DNA of 64,000 bases from Macrostomum lignano (taxonomy: Eukaryota), in NCBI GenBank assembly GCA_002269645.1, contig NIVC01001635.1:192388-256387 (forward strand). Direction: 5' to 3'. The position numbers and the translations under genes are program-made. Positions 1,316 through 49,200 of the stretch are shown here, in pieces. The notes under the pieces are model-generated. The model saw only the letters and a program-made list of their open reading frames with translations, was not told the DNA's origin and ran no database searches. Each line of letters opens with the position of its first letter. Within the stretch, counting starts at the first letter, position 1.

Positions 1316-3256
1316 TTAATAAACATAATTCTGCGGAGCTTCAGGCGGACAGAAGCGCAGTACGAAAGCGATAAAGCCGCGAATAATTGACTGGCCAATC
1401 TGGGGGCAGCTGGGCGACAGGCAGAATTGTTCGGCGCGAATTCGCAGATCTCTGAACACCGTGCGGTTGTAGGGATTTCGATTCGAACAGTAGCGCAAGA
1501 TCAGAAACTTGTAGTACAGGAACGGGGTGACAATGGAGCCATAGCCAGTGAACAGCATGAGAATAACTGCTGGCATTAGGAAGATCTCATTCAGAGCGAT
1601 TAGGGTCAGGATGGTGCGCGTGTTCCGGTCGATGTAGCTGGTCAAGCGGAGCACCTGCGGTGGGTTTTTTGAGTTGCGGTAATTAGCACCTGGTTGCCTA
1701 GCAACTGAGGATCTGGGAGGCTGACCCAGCAACTAAGGATCTGGGAGGCAGGTGGCCCAGCAACTGGGGAGGCTGGCCCAGCAACTGAGGATCTGGGAGG
1801 CTGGTCCAGCAACTGAGGATCTGGGAGGCTGGCTCAGCAACTGAGGATCTGGGAGGCAGGTGGCCCAGCAACTGGGGAGGCTGGCCCAGCAACTGAGGAT
1901 CTGGGAGGCTGGTCCAGCAACTGAGGATCTGGGAGGCTGGCTCAGCAACTGAGGATCTGGGAGGCAGGTGGCCCAGCAACTGGGGAGGCTGGCCCAGCAA
2001 CTGAGGATCTGGGAGGCTGGTCCAGAAAGTGACACTCTGGGAGGCTGGCCCAGCAACTGACACTGGGAGGGTGGCCCAGCAACTGAGGATCTGGGAGGCT
2101 GGCCCAGCAACTGAGGATCTGGGAGGCTGGTCCAGAAACTGACACTCTGGGAGGCTGGCCCAGCAACTGACACTCTGGGAGGCTGGCCCAGCAACTGAGG
2201 ATCTGGGAGGCTGGTCCAGAAACTGACATTCTGGGAGGCTGGCCTAGCAACTGAGGATCTGGGAGGCTGGTCCAGAAACTGACATTTTGGGAGGCTGGCC
2301 CAGCAACTGAGGATCTGCGAGGCTGGTCCAGAAACTGACATTCTGGGAGGCTGGCCCAGCAACTGAGGATCTGGGAGGCTGGTCCAGAAACTGACATTCT
2401 GGGAGGCTGGCCCAGCAACTGAGGATCTGCGAGGCTGGCCCAGCAACTGAGGATCTGTGAGGCTGGTCCAGAAACTGACACTCTGGGAGGCTGGCCCAGC
2501 AACTGAGAATCTGAGAGGCAGGTGGCCCAGCAACTGACACTCTGGGAGGCTGGCCCAGCAACCGAAGATCGGTAGCCAGCAGCCATAACAGTGTAAGTCC
2601 GTGGGTTGAGTTGCAGCGAATAACAAAACGTGAGGAGACCTCACAGGCTCACGCCAATATATTTATTGCCAAAGTTAGGGTGGGTGTAAGCACCCTAAGC
2701 ACACACACGCCGCAGCGCTTAAACCCCAACCCCCAAACCAGCCAGACGTGCGCATTTAAGTGCACGCGCACCAATAAGCGAGACTACAACAGCAATGAAC
2801 CCCGGCCCGCACCTGATCAGTCACAGGCAGCTGCTGCCTGGTCACCAGCTGCCTGGTGTACACGGTGGAGTGCAGCAAAGCGAACAGGAACACAGGGACC
2901 AAAGCCAGAGTGACCGGGGCAGGCGCCATAGCAAAGATGAGCACAAACAGCAGGTAGTGAGCATTATCCTCAGCCAGCAGTCGCCGCATGCCGTCCATAT
3001 TCATTGTGACGCCGGCCTCCCGAGCTCGGGTGTGCAGCTTCAAAGCGGAGGCGACGCCGTACGCTAACAGGGCCCTGGTGTGCCAGGCGGGCAGGGAGGT
3101 GAACAGGTACAGAACAGTGAACACCAGGGTGCCCAATCGGGCCATGTACATGAGAAAATCGTGGTTGCCGCCTCGACCAGCTGCTGGCTGCTGCTGCTGT
3201 TGTTGCTGCTGCTGATTGCTTTCATCTACATGATCTCCACCTGCTTGTTGAGACAT
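1316..3256 (-). CDS. TMEM33: Transmembrane protein 33 (TMEM33/Pom33 family ER membrane protein), 2 exons, about 260 aa, with an N-terminal polyQ tract
   Basis: Exon 1 is 3256-2813 (ATG MSQQAGG... to ...VTDQ, donor CAG|GTGCGG). Exon 2 is 1654-1316 (acceptor CCGCAG|GTG, ends in a stop). The join is phase 0. Family motifs recognised from memory: RALLAYGVASALKLH, LLAEDNAHYL, FLYYKFLILRYCSNRNPYNRTVFRDLR. Confidence 0.92.
1690..2580. repeat. Intronic minisatellite in TMEM33 (core GCAACTGAGGATCTGGGAGGCTGGCCCA, variable units of about 20-25 bp)
   Basis: Tandem units are directly visible. They account for the repetitive ORFs between 1698 and 2644. Confidence 0.95.
1693..1705. promoter_or_regulatory. 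RFX X-box (GTTGCCTAGCAAC) in the TMEM33 intron
   Basis: Exact match to GTTGCC-N1-RGCAAC. Function is not demonstrated. Confidence 0.5.
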
Positions 3257-3430
3257 CTCTAATTTTGATTTCTTTACTTGTTTATGGCTGTTCTGTAGGT
3301 CAAATTTGAGATTGCAGCCACATGCAAGGAAGTAATAATTGTACTTAATGTTGCGTCTTATGAGCCTCTGACACATACAAGTTGCAGAAGTCTGCAGAAT
3401 CTATGGTTGCAGACTATTTAAATTTGAGTT

Positions 3431-46200: not shown

Positions 46201-49200
46201 TTGAAGCAACAGCTGTGCAAATTTCACACTTGTCTCTCAGAATTTCGTCTGCTTAAAAGTGTGAGCAAACAGCAGATACGCGGATGTTGGGAATAGATTC
46301 GCTAACGAGCTTCTTGTTAAGGCCAAGATGCTTTTATTTAGCTTCTATTCCACACTCGCAGCTTCCTTCGGCTCTCCATCCAATTTGACATCTTTTAACT
46401 GATTATTAAAAAATTAACTCTAGTAAAACAAAGCAATTCAAGGCATCCCTGCGTGTCTTGACAAGGAAAGAAGGCCTATGCAGCATGACTGAATGCAAGA
46501 CAACAGCAGCTCCGCAGTGAATTATTCAGCAGAAAGCTGACTAACTGCCCTCTGTTGAGGATGACAATGCCTGCTTAATGCATGCGCACTGTTTCGAAAG
46601 TCCGTTTCTGAATTTTCTTTCTTGGCTGCTACTGTTGCTGCTGCAGATTTAGCGAAGGCAGCAGCTTGGCTAATTGAGCAGCTACTCACGACGCGGAGAG
46701 CCGCCGCGGGCGACTCGCTTGAAACACATTGGTTGCCATGGCAACCGGGTAGGGCCACAGCCAATTTCTTTCTTCGCCACTCACTCTAAAACTTGCTACC
46801 TATTGTTGCAAGAACTTGGATACTTTTTTCACCGTAAAGCCGACGCAAAATTCACAAGAAGCTTCAGGCCTTGTCTCTCGGATGCTTTTAAGCTTTCTAG
46901 CTGTCTGCGAGACAGAATCCACAATGGAAGAGGGAGAGTCTGCTTTTGCGTGCTTTTAAAAAAACAACTATAAAATGCGGTGTTTCCGTTAAGAAGTGAA
47001 GTAAAAAAACTGATGGCGCATTTCACTGTTTGGTATCGCATTCCGCTTTGTTCTTTGCAGGCAGCAACGCCACGCTGCAGGTTGATTGGGACGATGGTAA
47101 CGGCTATCAGAACTACCTGGCTACTGAAGGTAAGCGTCTGTCTGTCTGTCTGTCTGTCTGTCTGTCTGTCTGTCTGTCTGTCTGTCTGTCTGTCTGTCCG
47201 TCTGTCTGTCTGTCTGTCTGTCTGTCTGTCTGTCTGTCTGTCTGTCTGTCTGTCTGTCTGTCTGTCTGTCTGTCTGTCTGTCTGTCTGTCTGTCTGTCTG
47301 TCTGTCTGTCTGTCTGTCTGTCTGTCTGTCTGTCTGTCTGTCTGTCTGTCTGTCTGTCTGTCTGTCTGTCTGTCTGTCTGTCTGTCTGTGTGTCTGTCTG
47401 TGTCTGTCTGTGTCTGTCTGTCTGTCTGTCTGTCTGTCTGTCTGTCTGTCTGCCACACACCAGGCAGCAGCACAGCTGATGTTAGAGGCAGTTGCACTAA
47501 ATGGAAGGCAACAGTTCAGGTGAGCCTGTTAGCTCAGCAATCAGGCTCAGGAAGCCACCCTGTCACCCTGCCCAGCTGCCACAGAAACCAGTCTGCTCCC
47601 AGTGCAAGCAGACAGCAATTATCTACTAGTCATGCAAGTGGAAATGAAAGCCTCGAAGGTATTCCTTAAATATATTTGACACTCCCTAATAGCAATGGTT
47701 CCCAGCCACTGCCATTAGTGATGCATTCACCAACAGCAAACAATTTCACCGAGAGCAAACTTCACCGTTTTGACTAGCTGTTTTCTCCCGACGCAGTTTA
47801 TTCGTAACCCAGGGAGATAAGTCCTAATAAACTTAGTGGTCCTATTCTAGCACTGACTCTGTGCATACATTTTGGCAAGCAGGAGAAACATTGCAAGGAT
47901 GTGCTGAAGTGACAAAGCTTATTTGATTTGTCTATGGTCGATAAGTTGCAACATCACATTAGACCACATTAAGTAAATAAGTTAAACGCTGTTCAATTCA
48001 TAGTCTATGGTTAGAACGTCCTTGGCAGCACTCAACGGCAGACACACGCCCATCGCACGGCAACCCATCGCACGGAGTTTGCGACGCACGAGTCAGACGC
48101 AAGACGCATTCCAAAACTTTGCGATAATGACAAATTTAATTTAGCTTTGTACTTTTTGTACATCTCTCTTGGATTAGTATCAAGAAATTCGAGCTCAAAT
48201 TAGCTCCAAAAAGCTATATTTTTAAAATTCAAATTAGCATAAAGGAAAGGGAACTATGAAGCAAAACTGTTTTATTTCGGGTTGACTCGACAGAAAATGT
48301 TCATAAACACTTGCGAAGATACAGAGTTCTACCATAGACAAATTCAGCCGGGGGGAAAGACCGAAGACCGAAATTTCAGAACGCCGAAACACCATACTTC
48401 ACAAGACCGAAACTTCACAAGACTGAAACTTCATAAGACCGAAACTTCATAAGACCGAAATTTCACAACGCCGAAAACTCAAAATGCAGGGCCCTTCACA
48501 AGACTGAAACTTCATAAGACCGAAATTTCATATAAGACCGAAATCTCACAACGCCGAAACACCATACTTCACAAGACCGAAACTTCACAAGACCGAAACT
48601 TCACAAGACCGAAACTTCATAAGACCGAAATTTCACAACGCCGAAAACTCAAAATGCAGGGCCCTTCACAAGACCGAAACTTCATAAGACCGAAATTTCA
48701 CAACGCCGAAAACTCAAAATGCAGGGCCCTTCACAAGACCGAAACTTCATAAGACCGAAATTTCACAACGCCGAAAACTCAAAATGCAGGGCCCTTCACA
48801 AGACTGAAACTTCATAAGACCGAAATTTCATATAAGACCGAAATCTCACAACGCCGAAACACCATACTTCATAAGACCGAAATTTCACAACGCCGAAAAC
48901 TTAAAATACTGGGCCCTTCACAAGACCGAAACTTCACAAGACCGAAATTTCATAAGACCGAAATTTCACAACGCCGAAAACTTAAAATACTGGGCCCTTC
49001 ACAAGACCGAAATTTCGTAAGGCCGCATAAATTAAAATGCCATATAGTACATAATGTCCTCTCTTGTTGACAATTTCGCGGGCCTATGGTGGAAAAACCA
49101 ATTGAAACACTTTGTTAATTCACTTGCCTACGAAGTACTCAAGTTGTTGTTCACGACTTTTTATTGAATAAATTCATTTTCTTTAACGTAGGTTCGCGTG

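Follow-up and report, generated by a model that had tools for sequence, protein, structure and literature searches.

The X-box, the DNA site of the RFX proteins, follows the consensus GTNRCC-N0-3-RGYAAC, in which two half-sites of the form GTTRCY are arranged as an inverted repeat, and it is conserved from fungi to animals (bioRxiv 10.1101/2022.11.11.515474; PMC2873420). This conservation has been reported to follow from the RFX residues that contact DNA, which are invariant across opisthokonts (PMC2873420). In C. elegans, X-boxes typically lie 100-250 bp 5' of the ATG (PMC2873420), and two 15-bp X-boxes have been found to act jointly on one gene (PMC3245922). Intronic and distal RFX sites are frequent in mouse ChIP-seq (PMC7498320). 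An rfx3-like gene whose product carries an RFX winged-helix domain has also been listed for a tapeworm (PMC6225667); for the flatworm Macrostomum lignano, a search of the literature returned no paper that deals with RFX sites.

The DNA analyzed here is a 64,000-nt stretch of the M. lignano genome (the window). An initial annotation had described four strict X-boxes in three neighboring genes (TMEM33, an AGBL carboxypeptidase, and a polycystin), together with a near match before the AGBL ATG, and all five sequences are present where they had been placed. Three are perfect palindromes of the form GTTGCC-N2/3-GGCAAC and fit the inverted GTTRCY consensus. The 15-bp palindrome GTTGCCA-T-TGGCAAC (GTTGCCATTGGCAAC) occurs twice: at 17030..17044, within intron 2 (14359-17793) of the AGBL2/3-type gene and 750 bp 5' of exon 3, where it may serve as an enhancer within the intron or as an internal promoter element; and at 39997..40011, 219-233 bp 5' of the putative ATG of a PKD1-like gene, where it is a candidate promoter RFX site. 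The latter distance agrees with the earlier figure of about 220 bp, and the identical 18-mer that had been described at the two sites was found (TGGTTGCCATTGGCAACA). A perfect 14-bp palindrome (GTTGCCATGGCAAC) lies at 46732..46745 within the PKD1-like intron 46137-47060, as a candidate intronic enhancer or modulator. All three sites fall within 30 kb and are spread over two genes. Site 39997 lies within a few hundred bp of an ATG, in the range typical of C. elegans X-boxes, whereas 17030, 46732, and 1693 are intronic. The site at 1693..1705 (GTTGCCTAGCAAC, in a TMEM33 intron) is X-box-like and fits the consensus with one mismatch, and the near match at 12030..12043 (GCAGCCATAGCAAC) has three mismatches and is located 88 bp 5' of the putative carboxypeptidase ATG (12132).

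When sites across the whole window were graded by their mismatches against GTTGCC-N0-3-GGCAAC, 3 perfect sites were observed, compared with ~0.011 expected (Poisson P(>=3) ~2e-7), and shuffled sequences produced no perfect X-box. The earlier rough estimate of 0.02 expected hits agrees with dinucleotide shuffles (mean 0.02). One site with a single mismatch (1693) was observed against 0.48 expected, and 22 sites with two mismatches against 8.1 expected; 14 of these 22 fall inside minisatellites. The half-site GGCAAC/GTTGCC itself occurs at a normal frequency (25 observed, 27.9 expected), and the non-random part is therefore the pairing of the halves. Of all 4,096 hexamers, GTTGCC alone forms three perfect inverted repeats with a short spacer once the tandem repeats of the window are set aside; the shifted register TTGCCA returns the same three loci. 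The M. lignano genome is ~760 Mb in size, and at that size ~0.003 windows with three perfect sites would be expected by chance. Within the window, 17030, 39997, and 46732 thus exceed chance, whereas 1693 and 12030 do not. The probability that chance alone accounts for every site is negligible: this explanation suits 1693 and 12030, which are treated as such, but for the three perfect sites a chance origin is rejected by the counts against expectation, the shuffles, and the hexamer scan. The description of strict X-boxes accordingly stands for the three perfect, non-random palindromes and falls for 1693. Likewise, the near match before the AGBL ATG is correctly positioned, but because many chance matches with three mismatches are expected, it cannot be distinguished statistically from chance despite its promoter-like position.

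The identities previously given to the two genes that carry the perfect sites are borne out. The first (12132..26027, plus strand, 3' end approximate) was delineated by Pfam, homology matches, and a tblastn exon map, and encodes a cytosolic carboxypeptidase of the AGBL2/3 (CCP2/3) type. Its product has a Pfam Pepdidase_M14_N match, a weak N-terminal motif at 14219-14305, and best matches to AGBL2_3 / cytosolic carboxypeptidase 2 and 3, with 60% identity to Mytilus. Intron 2, which holds site 17030, is in frame (exon 2 donor 14358/14359, exon 3 acceptor 17793/17794). AGBL2 appears in a list of validated ciliary genes (PMC11317154), and in airway cilia modules it shows co-expression with RFX2/3 and FOXJ1 (PMC6825243). 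The second gene (40230..64000, plus strand) runs past the window end and is identified as PKD1-like by Pfam domains and homology, with a signal peptide, a WSC-like domain, PKD domains, REJ, PLAT, a polycystin domain, and a channel domain. Its putative ATG at 40230 is followed by a 20-residue signal peptide segment and a GT donor. A PKD-domain exon (45741-45965) lies upstream of site 46732 and further PKD domains lie downstream, while the exons around intron 46137-47060 have a GTGAGT donor, a CAG acceptor, and an in-frame splice, and jointly form a PKD-domain motif. Expression of the planarian pkd1L genes has been localized to ciliated sensory neurons (PMC11448475). For both M. lignano genes, the presumed link to cilia comes from homology only.

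Our favored reading, held with moderate confidence, is that sites 17030, 39997, and 46732 would be X-boxes bound by a flatworm RFX dimer, in which each winged-helix DNA-binding domain would recognize one GTTGCCA arm. The sites would then serve two ciliary genes as promoter and intronic enhancer elements. We infer that 39997 is the promoter X-box of the PKD1-like gene, through which occupancy by RFX would activate it in ciliated cells, with ciliated sensory neurons as the most plausible type. Sites 46732 and 17030 would act as intronic enhancers or modulators, and these intronic sites could tie the PKD1-like and AGBL2/3-type genes to the ciliogenic program. Several observations count against the RFX reading: the intronic location of two of the three, outside the canonical promoter position; the lack of a strong X-box in the homologous invertebrate loci compared; the non-appearance of AGBL2/3 and PKD1L genes in the human target-gene files searched; the absence of a forkhead motif near the sites; the repeat-rich genome; and a general excess of palindromes in the window, which is spread over many hexamers.

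The initial annotation had gone further, reading the four sites as the signature of a single RFX-driven ciliary cluster in which TMEM33, the carboxypeptidase, and the polycystin are co-regulated. The three genes are indeed neighbors, the three strong sites lie within 30 kb of each other, and the literature connects TMEM33 with polycystin-2. The assignment of TMEM33 itself is upheld by Pfam (TMEM33_Pom33, E 3e-33 and 1e-24; 1319..3400, minus strand, two coding exons seen), but this is an endoplasmic reticulum/nuclear-envelope family for which ciliary evidence is absent. The mismatch-graded scan of the window found no credible X-box in TMEM33, nor any near its 5' end. Site 1693, which is at chance level, is intronic and distant from the TMEM33 promoter, and overlaps the diverged first unit of a 28-bp minisatellite (1696..2570 by TRF; ~31.6 units of GCCCAGCAACTGAGGATCTGGGAGGCTG), which is the source of its AGCAAC half; a variant unit (GTGGCCCAGCAAC) recurs five times and matches the relaxed RFX consensus each time. 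TMEM33 is also absent from the supplementary files searched for one human RFX target-gene study, as are the AGBL2/3 and PKD1L genes. Finally, the carboxypeptidase and PKD1-like genes are ~13 kb apart, and the interval holds a C-type-lectin-like gene in which the same scan found no X-box. A co-regulated cluster of at least three adjacent motif-bearing genes is therefore not supported, since only two genes have credible sites and they are not contiguous; a pair of neighboring targets falls short of a cluster. We consider the three-gene cluster very improbable, and count three credible X-boxes in two genes.

The palindromes could also be non-functional, either as copies of a small dispersed element or as products of a genome-wide tendency toward short palindromes, with a mere resemblance to the X-box. 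The genome is repeat-rich, with tandem repeats making up 30% of the window, and short perfect palindromes overall are ~2.6 times more frequent in the window than expected from independent bases (115 observed, 45 expected). In addition to the 18-mer common to 17030 and 39997, an exact 14-mer (CGACTCGCTTGAAA, plus strand in both cases) is found near 17030 (17058..17071, 13 bp 3' of the X-box) and 46732 (46711..46724, 7 bp 5' of the X-box). Deep conservation is also lacking in the distant loci compared, as no strong X-box (0 or 1 mismatch) was found in the CCP loci of Mytilus, Helobdella, and Nematostella or in the Mercenaria PKD1L2 locus (gene plus or minus 10 kb; partial gene models). The absence of strong X-boxes from these 126 kb of other invertebrate loci equally indicates that such sites are not common filler. 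Against a repeat origin, local alignments of the flanks (plus or minus 400 bp, both orientations) showed no similarity among the sites above the null level, and in blastn of the unique segments around them within the window the motif itself was the only match. The three sites are therefore independent rather than copies of one repeat or element, and carriage by a dispersed repeat or transposable element, which had been named as a refuting outcome, is rejected within the window. Site 17030 lies in a 485-bp unique segment with a minisatellite on each side, and a dispersed repeat near 39997 stops at ~39600, excluding the site. The 14-mer follows the X-box at 17030 and precedes the one at 46732, an arrangement that collinear copies would not show, and no second hexamer palindrome was seen three times. 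Moreover, the palindromes match the highest-affinity RFX site exactly, and one of them occupies a promoter-proximal position at a cilium-linked gene. A non-functional origin thus appears unlikely. We give a similarly low probability to the sites being bound by RFX in some role other than the activation of ciliary genes, the intronic ones as internal promoters for shorter transcripts or as repressive elements, or else as targets of a non-ciliary RFX paralog. The distal 15-bp X-box of C. elegans F25B4.2 represses (PMC3245922), in mouse, cell-cycle and metabolic genes are among the targets of RFX1/3 (PMC7498320), and the intronic position of two sites and the CCAAT and TATAAAA sequences 3' of 46732 would suit such roles. 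Nevertheless, between site 46732 or 17030 and the exon that follows it, no ATG-initiated in-frame start or signal peptide was found; the surroundings of the sites yielded neither a nested coding gene nor an Rfam RNA; and the gene families suit a ciliary role.

A more elaborate, flatworm-specific arrangement in place of plain X-boxes is rather unlikely. This composite would consist of a perfect 7+7 palindrome, an optional central base that makes an internal CCAAT (GTTGCCAATGGCAAC), nearby CCAAT boxes, and the 14-mer at the two intronic sites as a possible partner motif, from which RFX with NF-Y and/or another factor could drive a sensory-cilium program through intronic enhancers. CCAAT pentamers lie near all three perfect sites, with one inside the spacer of each 15-bp site, but the enrichment is modest (6 observed, 2.3 expected), and the extended NF-Y consensus is fitted by one CCAAT only, near 12030. 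The MHC class II X-Y promoter module, which is vertebrate-specific, combines the RFX complex (RFX5/AP/ANK) and NF-Y, with a half-site X1 box and a CCAAT/ATTGG box nearby. Its likeness to the M. lignano sites lies in this modestly enriched CCAAT and serves as a lead only. If the composite were true, a PKD1-like receptor/channel would be a direct RFX target, unlike the KLP-6 route reported for C. elegans polycystins.

Confirmation of the favored reading as RFX-bound X-boxes would make these the first concrete RFX/X-box target sites on record for M. lignano, and would place a PKD1-like gene and a tubulin deglutamylase of the CCP2/3 type among the direct RFX targets of a flatworm. The regulatory link between RFX and cilia would thereby extend to Platyhelminthes, and the sites would provide short, defined elements for ciliated-cell-specific reporters in a transgenic model.

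The M. lignano sites resemble those of several described systems. As in the DAF-19/RFX targets of C. elegans (F25B4.2; PMC3245922), they are inverted repeats of the GTTRCY type, with 15-bp variants, a promoter site within ~250 bp of the ATG, and more than one X-box per gene; the nematode targets act in ciliated sensory neurons. In contrast, nematode sites are usually imperfect, whereas those of M. lignano are perfect 7+7 palindromes, lie deep in introns in two of three cases, and are known from their sequence; it is also the PKD1-like gene itself that carries the motif in M. lignano. For Drosophila dRFX, the X-box consensus likewise accepts N1-3 spacers, and the true targets, which are ciliary genes of sensory neurons, show an excess of palindromic X-boxes (PMC2375033). 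The Drosophila set was defined by two-species conservation and dRFX dependence (PMC2375033), the M. lignano sites by sequence. In mammalian multiciliated cells, RFX1/2/3 peaks are found in promoters, introns, and intergenic enhancers, and the targets are enriched for cilia genes (PMC7498320); the core of the human RFX2 motif (GTTGCCATGGCAAC) is identical to site 46732. Several vertebrate RFX paralogs act with FOXJ1, whereas forkhead motifs are absent from the 150 bp on either side of each M. lignano site. On the best reading, the two genes would be ordinary RFX targets and a further instance of a well-known mechanism rather than a new class of mechanism.

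The strict X-box pattern occurs four times in the window against 0.02 occurrences expected from dinucleotide shuffles, and every motif sequence quoted in the initial annotation was found at the coordinate assigned to it. When sites are graded by their mismatches to GTTGCC-N0-3-GGCAAC, three (17030, 39997, and 46732) have no mismatch, for an expectation of about 0.011 (P for three or more, ~2e-7). A single site (1693) has one mismatch (0.48 expected), and 22 sites have two (8.1 expected), 14 of which lie in minisatellites. The half-site is not raised in frequency in the window (25 observed vs. 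27.9 expected); the non-random feature is the pairing of half-sites, not the half-site itself. Short palindromes as a class are 2.6 times as frequent in the window as expected from independent bases, an excess that is spread across many hexamers. In a control using all 4,096 hexamers, GTTGCC alone gives three perfect inverted repeats with a spacer of 0–3 outside tandem repeats; TTGCCA, which covers these loci in a shifted register, scores like it, and the palindrome arms are 7 bp long. Sites 17030 and 39997 both read GTTGCCA-T-TGGCAAC, while site 46732 reads GTTGCCA|TGGCAAC and is identical to the human RFX2 motif core. All three perfect palindromes are genuine, and their occurrence is not random.

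Site 1693, located in a TMEM33 intron, is at chance level. It overlaps the first unit of a 28-bp minisatellite (1696–2570), from whose unit junction, GGCTGGCCCAGCAAC, it differs at 4 of 15 positions. This minisatellite carries approximately 30 CAGCAAC half-site-like copies, as well as five copies of a variant unit, GTGGCCCAGCAAC, that fits the relaxed RFX consensus. These units were rejected as independent sites, being tandem copies of one unit; the array counts as one event and is compatible with chance, and both its half-site-like copies and its GTGGCCCAGCAAC units are probably incidental, although any PWM scan would display it as a dense motif cluster. Lying 88 bp upstream of the putative carboxypeptidase ATG, site 12030 is placed as a promoter element would be. 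Because it has three mismatches, which is chance level, this near match carries no statistical weight and was rejected as X-box evidence.

Three of the genes in the window were assigned from Pfam and homology. TMEM33 is encoded on the minus strand by ORFs at 1319–1732 and 2759–3400 (Pfam TMEM33_Pom33, E-values 3e-33 and 1e-24). The cytosolic carboxypeptidase (CCP), on the plus strand, has a conserved core from exon 17811–17987 onward, and its nearest relatives are AGBL2_3 and cytosolic carboxypeptidases 2 and 3 (60% identity in Mytilus). Its exon 2 contains the CCP2/3 N-terminal motif GPFWPR (14219–14305), a weak but recurrent match to three different homologs. The large PKD1-like polycystin gene, also on the plus strand, begins with a signal-peptide exon at 40230, followed by a weak WSC match (42.3 kb), a PKD domain (45741–45965), a weak F5/8-C match (51.2 kb), further PKD domains (52–54.6 kb), REJ (56.3 kb), PLAT (60.3 kb), and polycystin and channel domains (61.4–63.6 kb). 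The window is of M. lignano origin: an 881-a.a. exon (52014–54656) is 99% identical to one M. lignano PKD-domain protein, and a 738-a.a. ORF (61393–63606) is 99% identical to M. lignano PLAT-domain proteins in UniRef. In the public M. lignano protein models, this single gene (40230–64000) is broken into at least three fragments: P0124 spans 52.0–55.8 kb, P0001 and P0002 span 56.3–61.9 kb, and these three UniRef proteins lack the signal-peptide exon and the channel domain (62–63.6 kb). The approximately 13 kb separating the carboxypeptidase and polycystin genes contains a two-exon ORF on the minus strand (34589–35137) whose start resembles a signal peptide and which has WVGLTD...EPNN motifs and no X-box. 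A Pfam search with this ORF gave no match, and the PDB match to mosGCTL-1 is weak (E = 0.0013); by its sequence, it resembles a secreted C-type lectin.

The placements proposed for the four sites within these genes were borne out. The start codon at 40230, which opens a signal-peptide exon followed by a GT donor, lies 219 bp downstream of the end of site 39997–40011. Site 46732 lies in PKD1-like intron 46137–47060 (donor GTGAGT, acceptor CAG), whose flanking exons join in frame to give a PKD-domain motif. Site 17030 lies in carboxypeptidase intron 2 (14359–17793), across which exons 2 and 3 splice in frame, and site 1693 lies in the TMEM33 intron. Near the intronic sites there is no convincing nested ORF, Rfam family, or tRNA, and no in-frame start codon was found downstream of 17030 or 46732 up to the next exon. 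CpG content is ordinary, the sites falling at unremarkable percentiles with no CpG-island signal.

The perfect sites could in principle have been spread as copies of a repeat, and the window is rich in repeated sequence, with minisatellites or microsatellites making up approximately 30% of it and occurring in almost every intron. Within the window, this explanation was rejected, as local alignment of the ±400 bp flanks in both orientations gave scores at the null level, and in blastn of the unique segments holding 17030 and 46732 the motif alone was matched elsewhere in the window. A short, SINE- or MITE-like dispersed repeat (77–92% identity, both orientations) is present in four copies (3426–3606, 34493–34577, 39378–39600, and 49571–49770), near the TMEM33 5′ end, the lectin-like gene, and the polycystin upstream region, and in a polycystin intron; the third copy stops approximately 400 bp before site 39997. 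Separately, CCAAT-box-like cores (AGCCAATCAG, GACCAATCAG, and CTATTGGCT) are found in the units of several unrelated intronic minisatellites (17226–17628, 18030–18222, 19889–20092, 43813–44201, and 63651–63935).

Other motifs accompany the perfect sites. Both intronic X-boxes have the same exact 14-mer, CGACTCGCTTGAAA, next to them (17058–17071 and 46711–46724), in the same strand orientation; among random window pairs, about 1 in 1,900 shares a k-mer of this length. Since the 14-mer is on opposite sides of the palindromes at 17030 and 46732, collinear duplication is argued against, and it may be a partner motif. Within ±150 bp of the three strong X-boxes there are six CCAAT/ATTGG pentamers vs. 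2.3 expected (17030–17044, 39997–40011, 46722–46765, and 39873–39927). The 15-bp X-boxes themselves include CCAAT because their minus strand reads GTTGCCAATGGCAAC; at site 46732, an ATTGG sits directly against the palindrome, with a CCAAT 15 bp downstream. Within 150 bp of the sites, no forkhead motif is present.

The X-box consensus, GTNRCC-N0-3-RGYAAC, consists of two GTTRCY half-sites in inverted orientation, to which an RFX dimer binds, and is enriched near transcription starts (bioRxiv 10.1101/2022.11.11.515474; PMC2873420). Its reported conservation, extending from fungi to animals, is attributed to invariant DNA-contact residues (PMC2873420). Flatworm RFX genes have been reported, as in the rfx3-like gene of a tapeworm (PMC6225667); for Macrostomum, our literature search turned up no publication dealing with RFX sites. 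In C. elegans, X-boxes usually lie 100–250 bp upstream of the coding sequence (PMC2873420), and two 15-bp X-boxes act jointly to determine where and how strongly F25B4.2 is expressed (PMC3245922). In Drosophila, palindromic X-boxes are over-represented in the true targets, with N1-3 spacers accepted (PMC2375033), and RFX1-3 peaks in mouse ependymal cells occur at promoters, introns, and intergenic regions, with less than one third at promoters (PMC7498320). AGBL2 is among the experimentally validated ciliary genes (PMC11317154) and shares airway cilia co-expression modules with RFX2, RFX3, and FOXJ1 (PMC6825243). Planarian pkd1L and pkd2 genes are expressed in sensory neurons that bear cilia, and both mechano- and chemosensation require them (PMC11448475). 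AGBL2/3, PKD1L1/2, PKDREJ, and TMEM33 go unmentioned in the supplementary files consulted for one human RFX target study (PMC5838959).

The carboxypeptidase and polycystin gene families fit a ciliary role, and RFX most likely binds these two cilium-linked genes at the three perfect palindromes. The best-supported explanation is that 39997 would be the promoter X-box of the PKD1-like gene, with 46732 as a putative intronic RFX element of the same gene and 17030 as that of the CCP2/3-type gene. Of the four X-boxes in three genes originally proposed, three perfect sites in two adjacent genes therefore stand, the TMEM33 site being at chance level. The further reading of the locus as an RFX-driven ciliary module is unsupported: with 1693 and 12030 at chance level, and approximately 13 kb with an X-box-less lectin-like gene separating the two targets, the module shrinks to a pair of neighboring genes. 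What is left would be a fresh instance of a well-established regulatory link, that of RFX and cilia, to which the perfect 7 + 7 palindromes, the CCAAT within the 15-bp variant, and the common 14-mer add modest interest.

The comparison loci were the CCP genes of Mytilus (L001), Helobdella (L002), and Nematostella (L003), and PKD1L2 of Mercenaria (L004), each taken with 10 kb on either side. No X-box with 0 or 1 mismatch was found in these 126 kb, in which the gene models are partial, so that such sites are not common filler; with these partial models, the four loci do not show deep conservation of the X-box at CCP and PKD1L2 homologs. The Nematostella locus contains a CCP2 homolog head-to-head with a homolog of CATSPER-beta, a flagellar channel subunit (the two genes at 1589–6904, minus strand, and 10001–20230, plus strand), and there is no strong X-box in between. 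This pair can be likened to the M. lignano locus, as in each a carboxypeptidase gene adjoins a gene for a channel of the cilium or flagellum.
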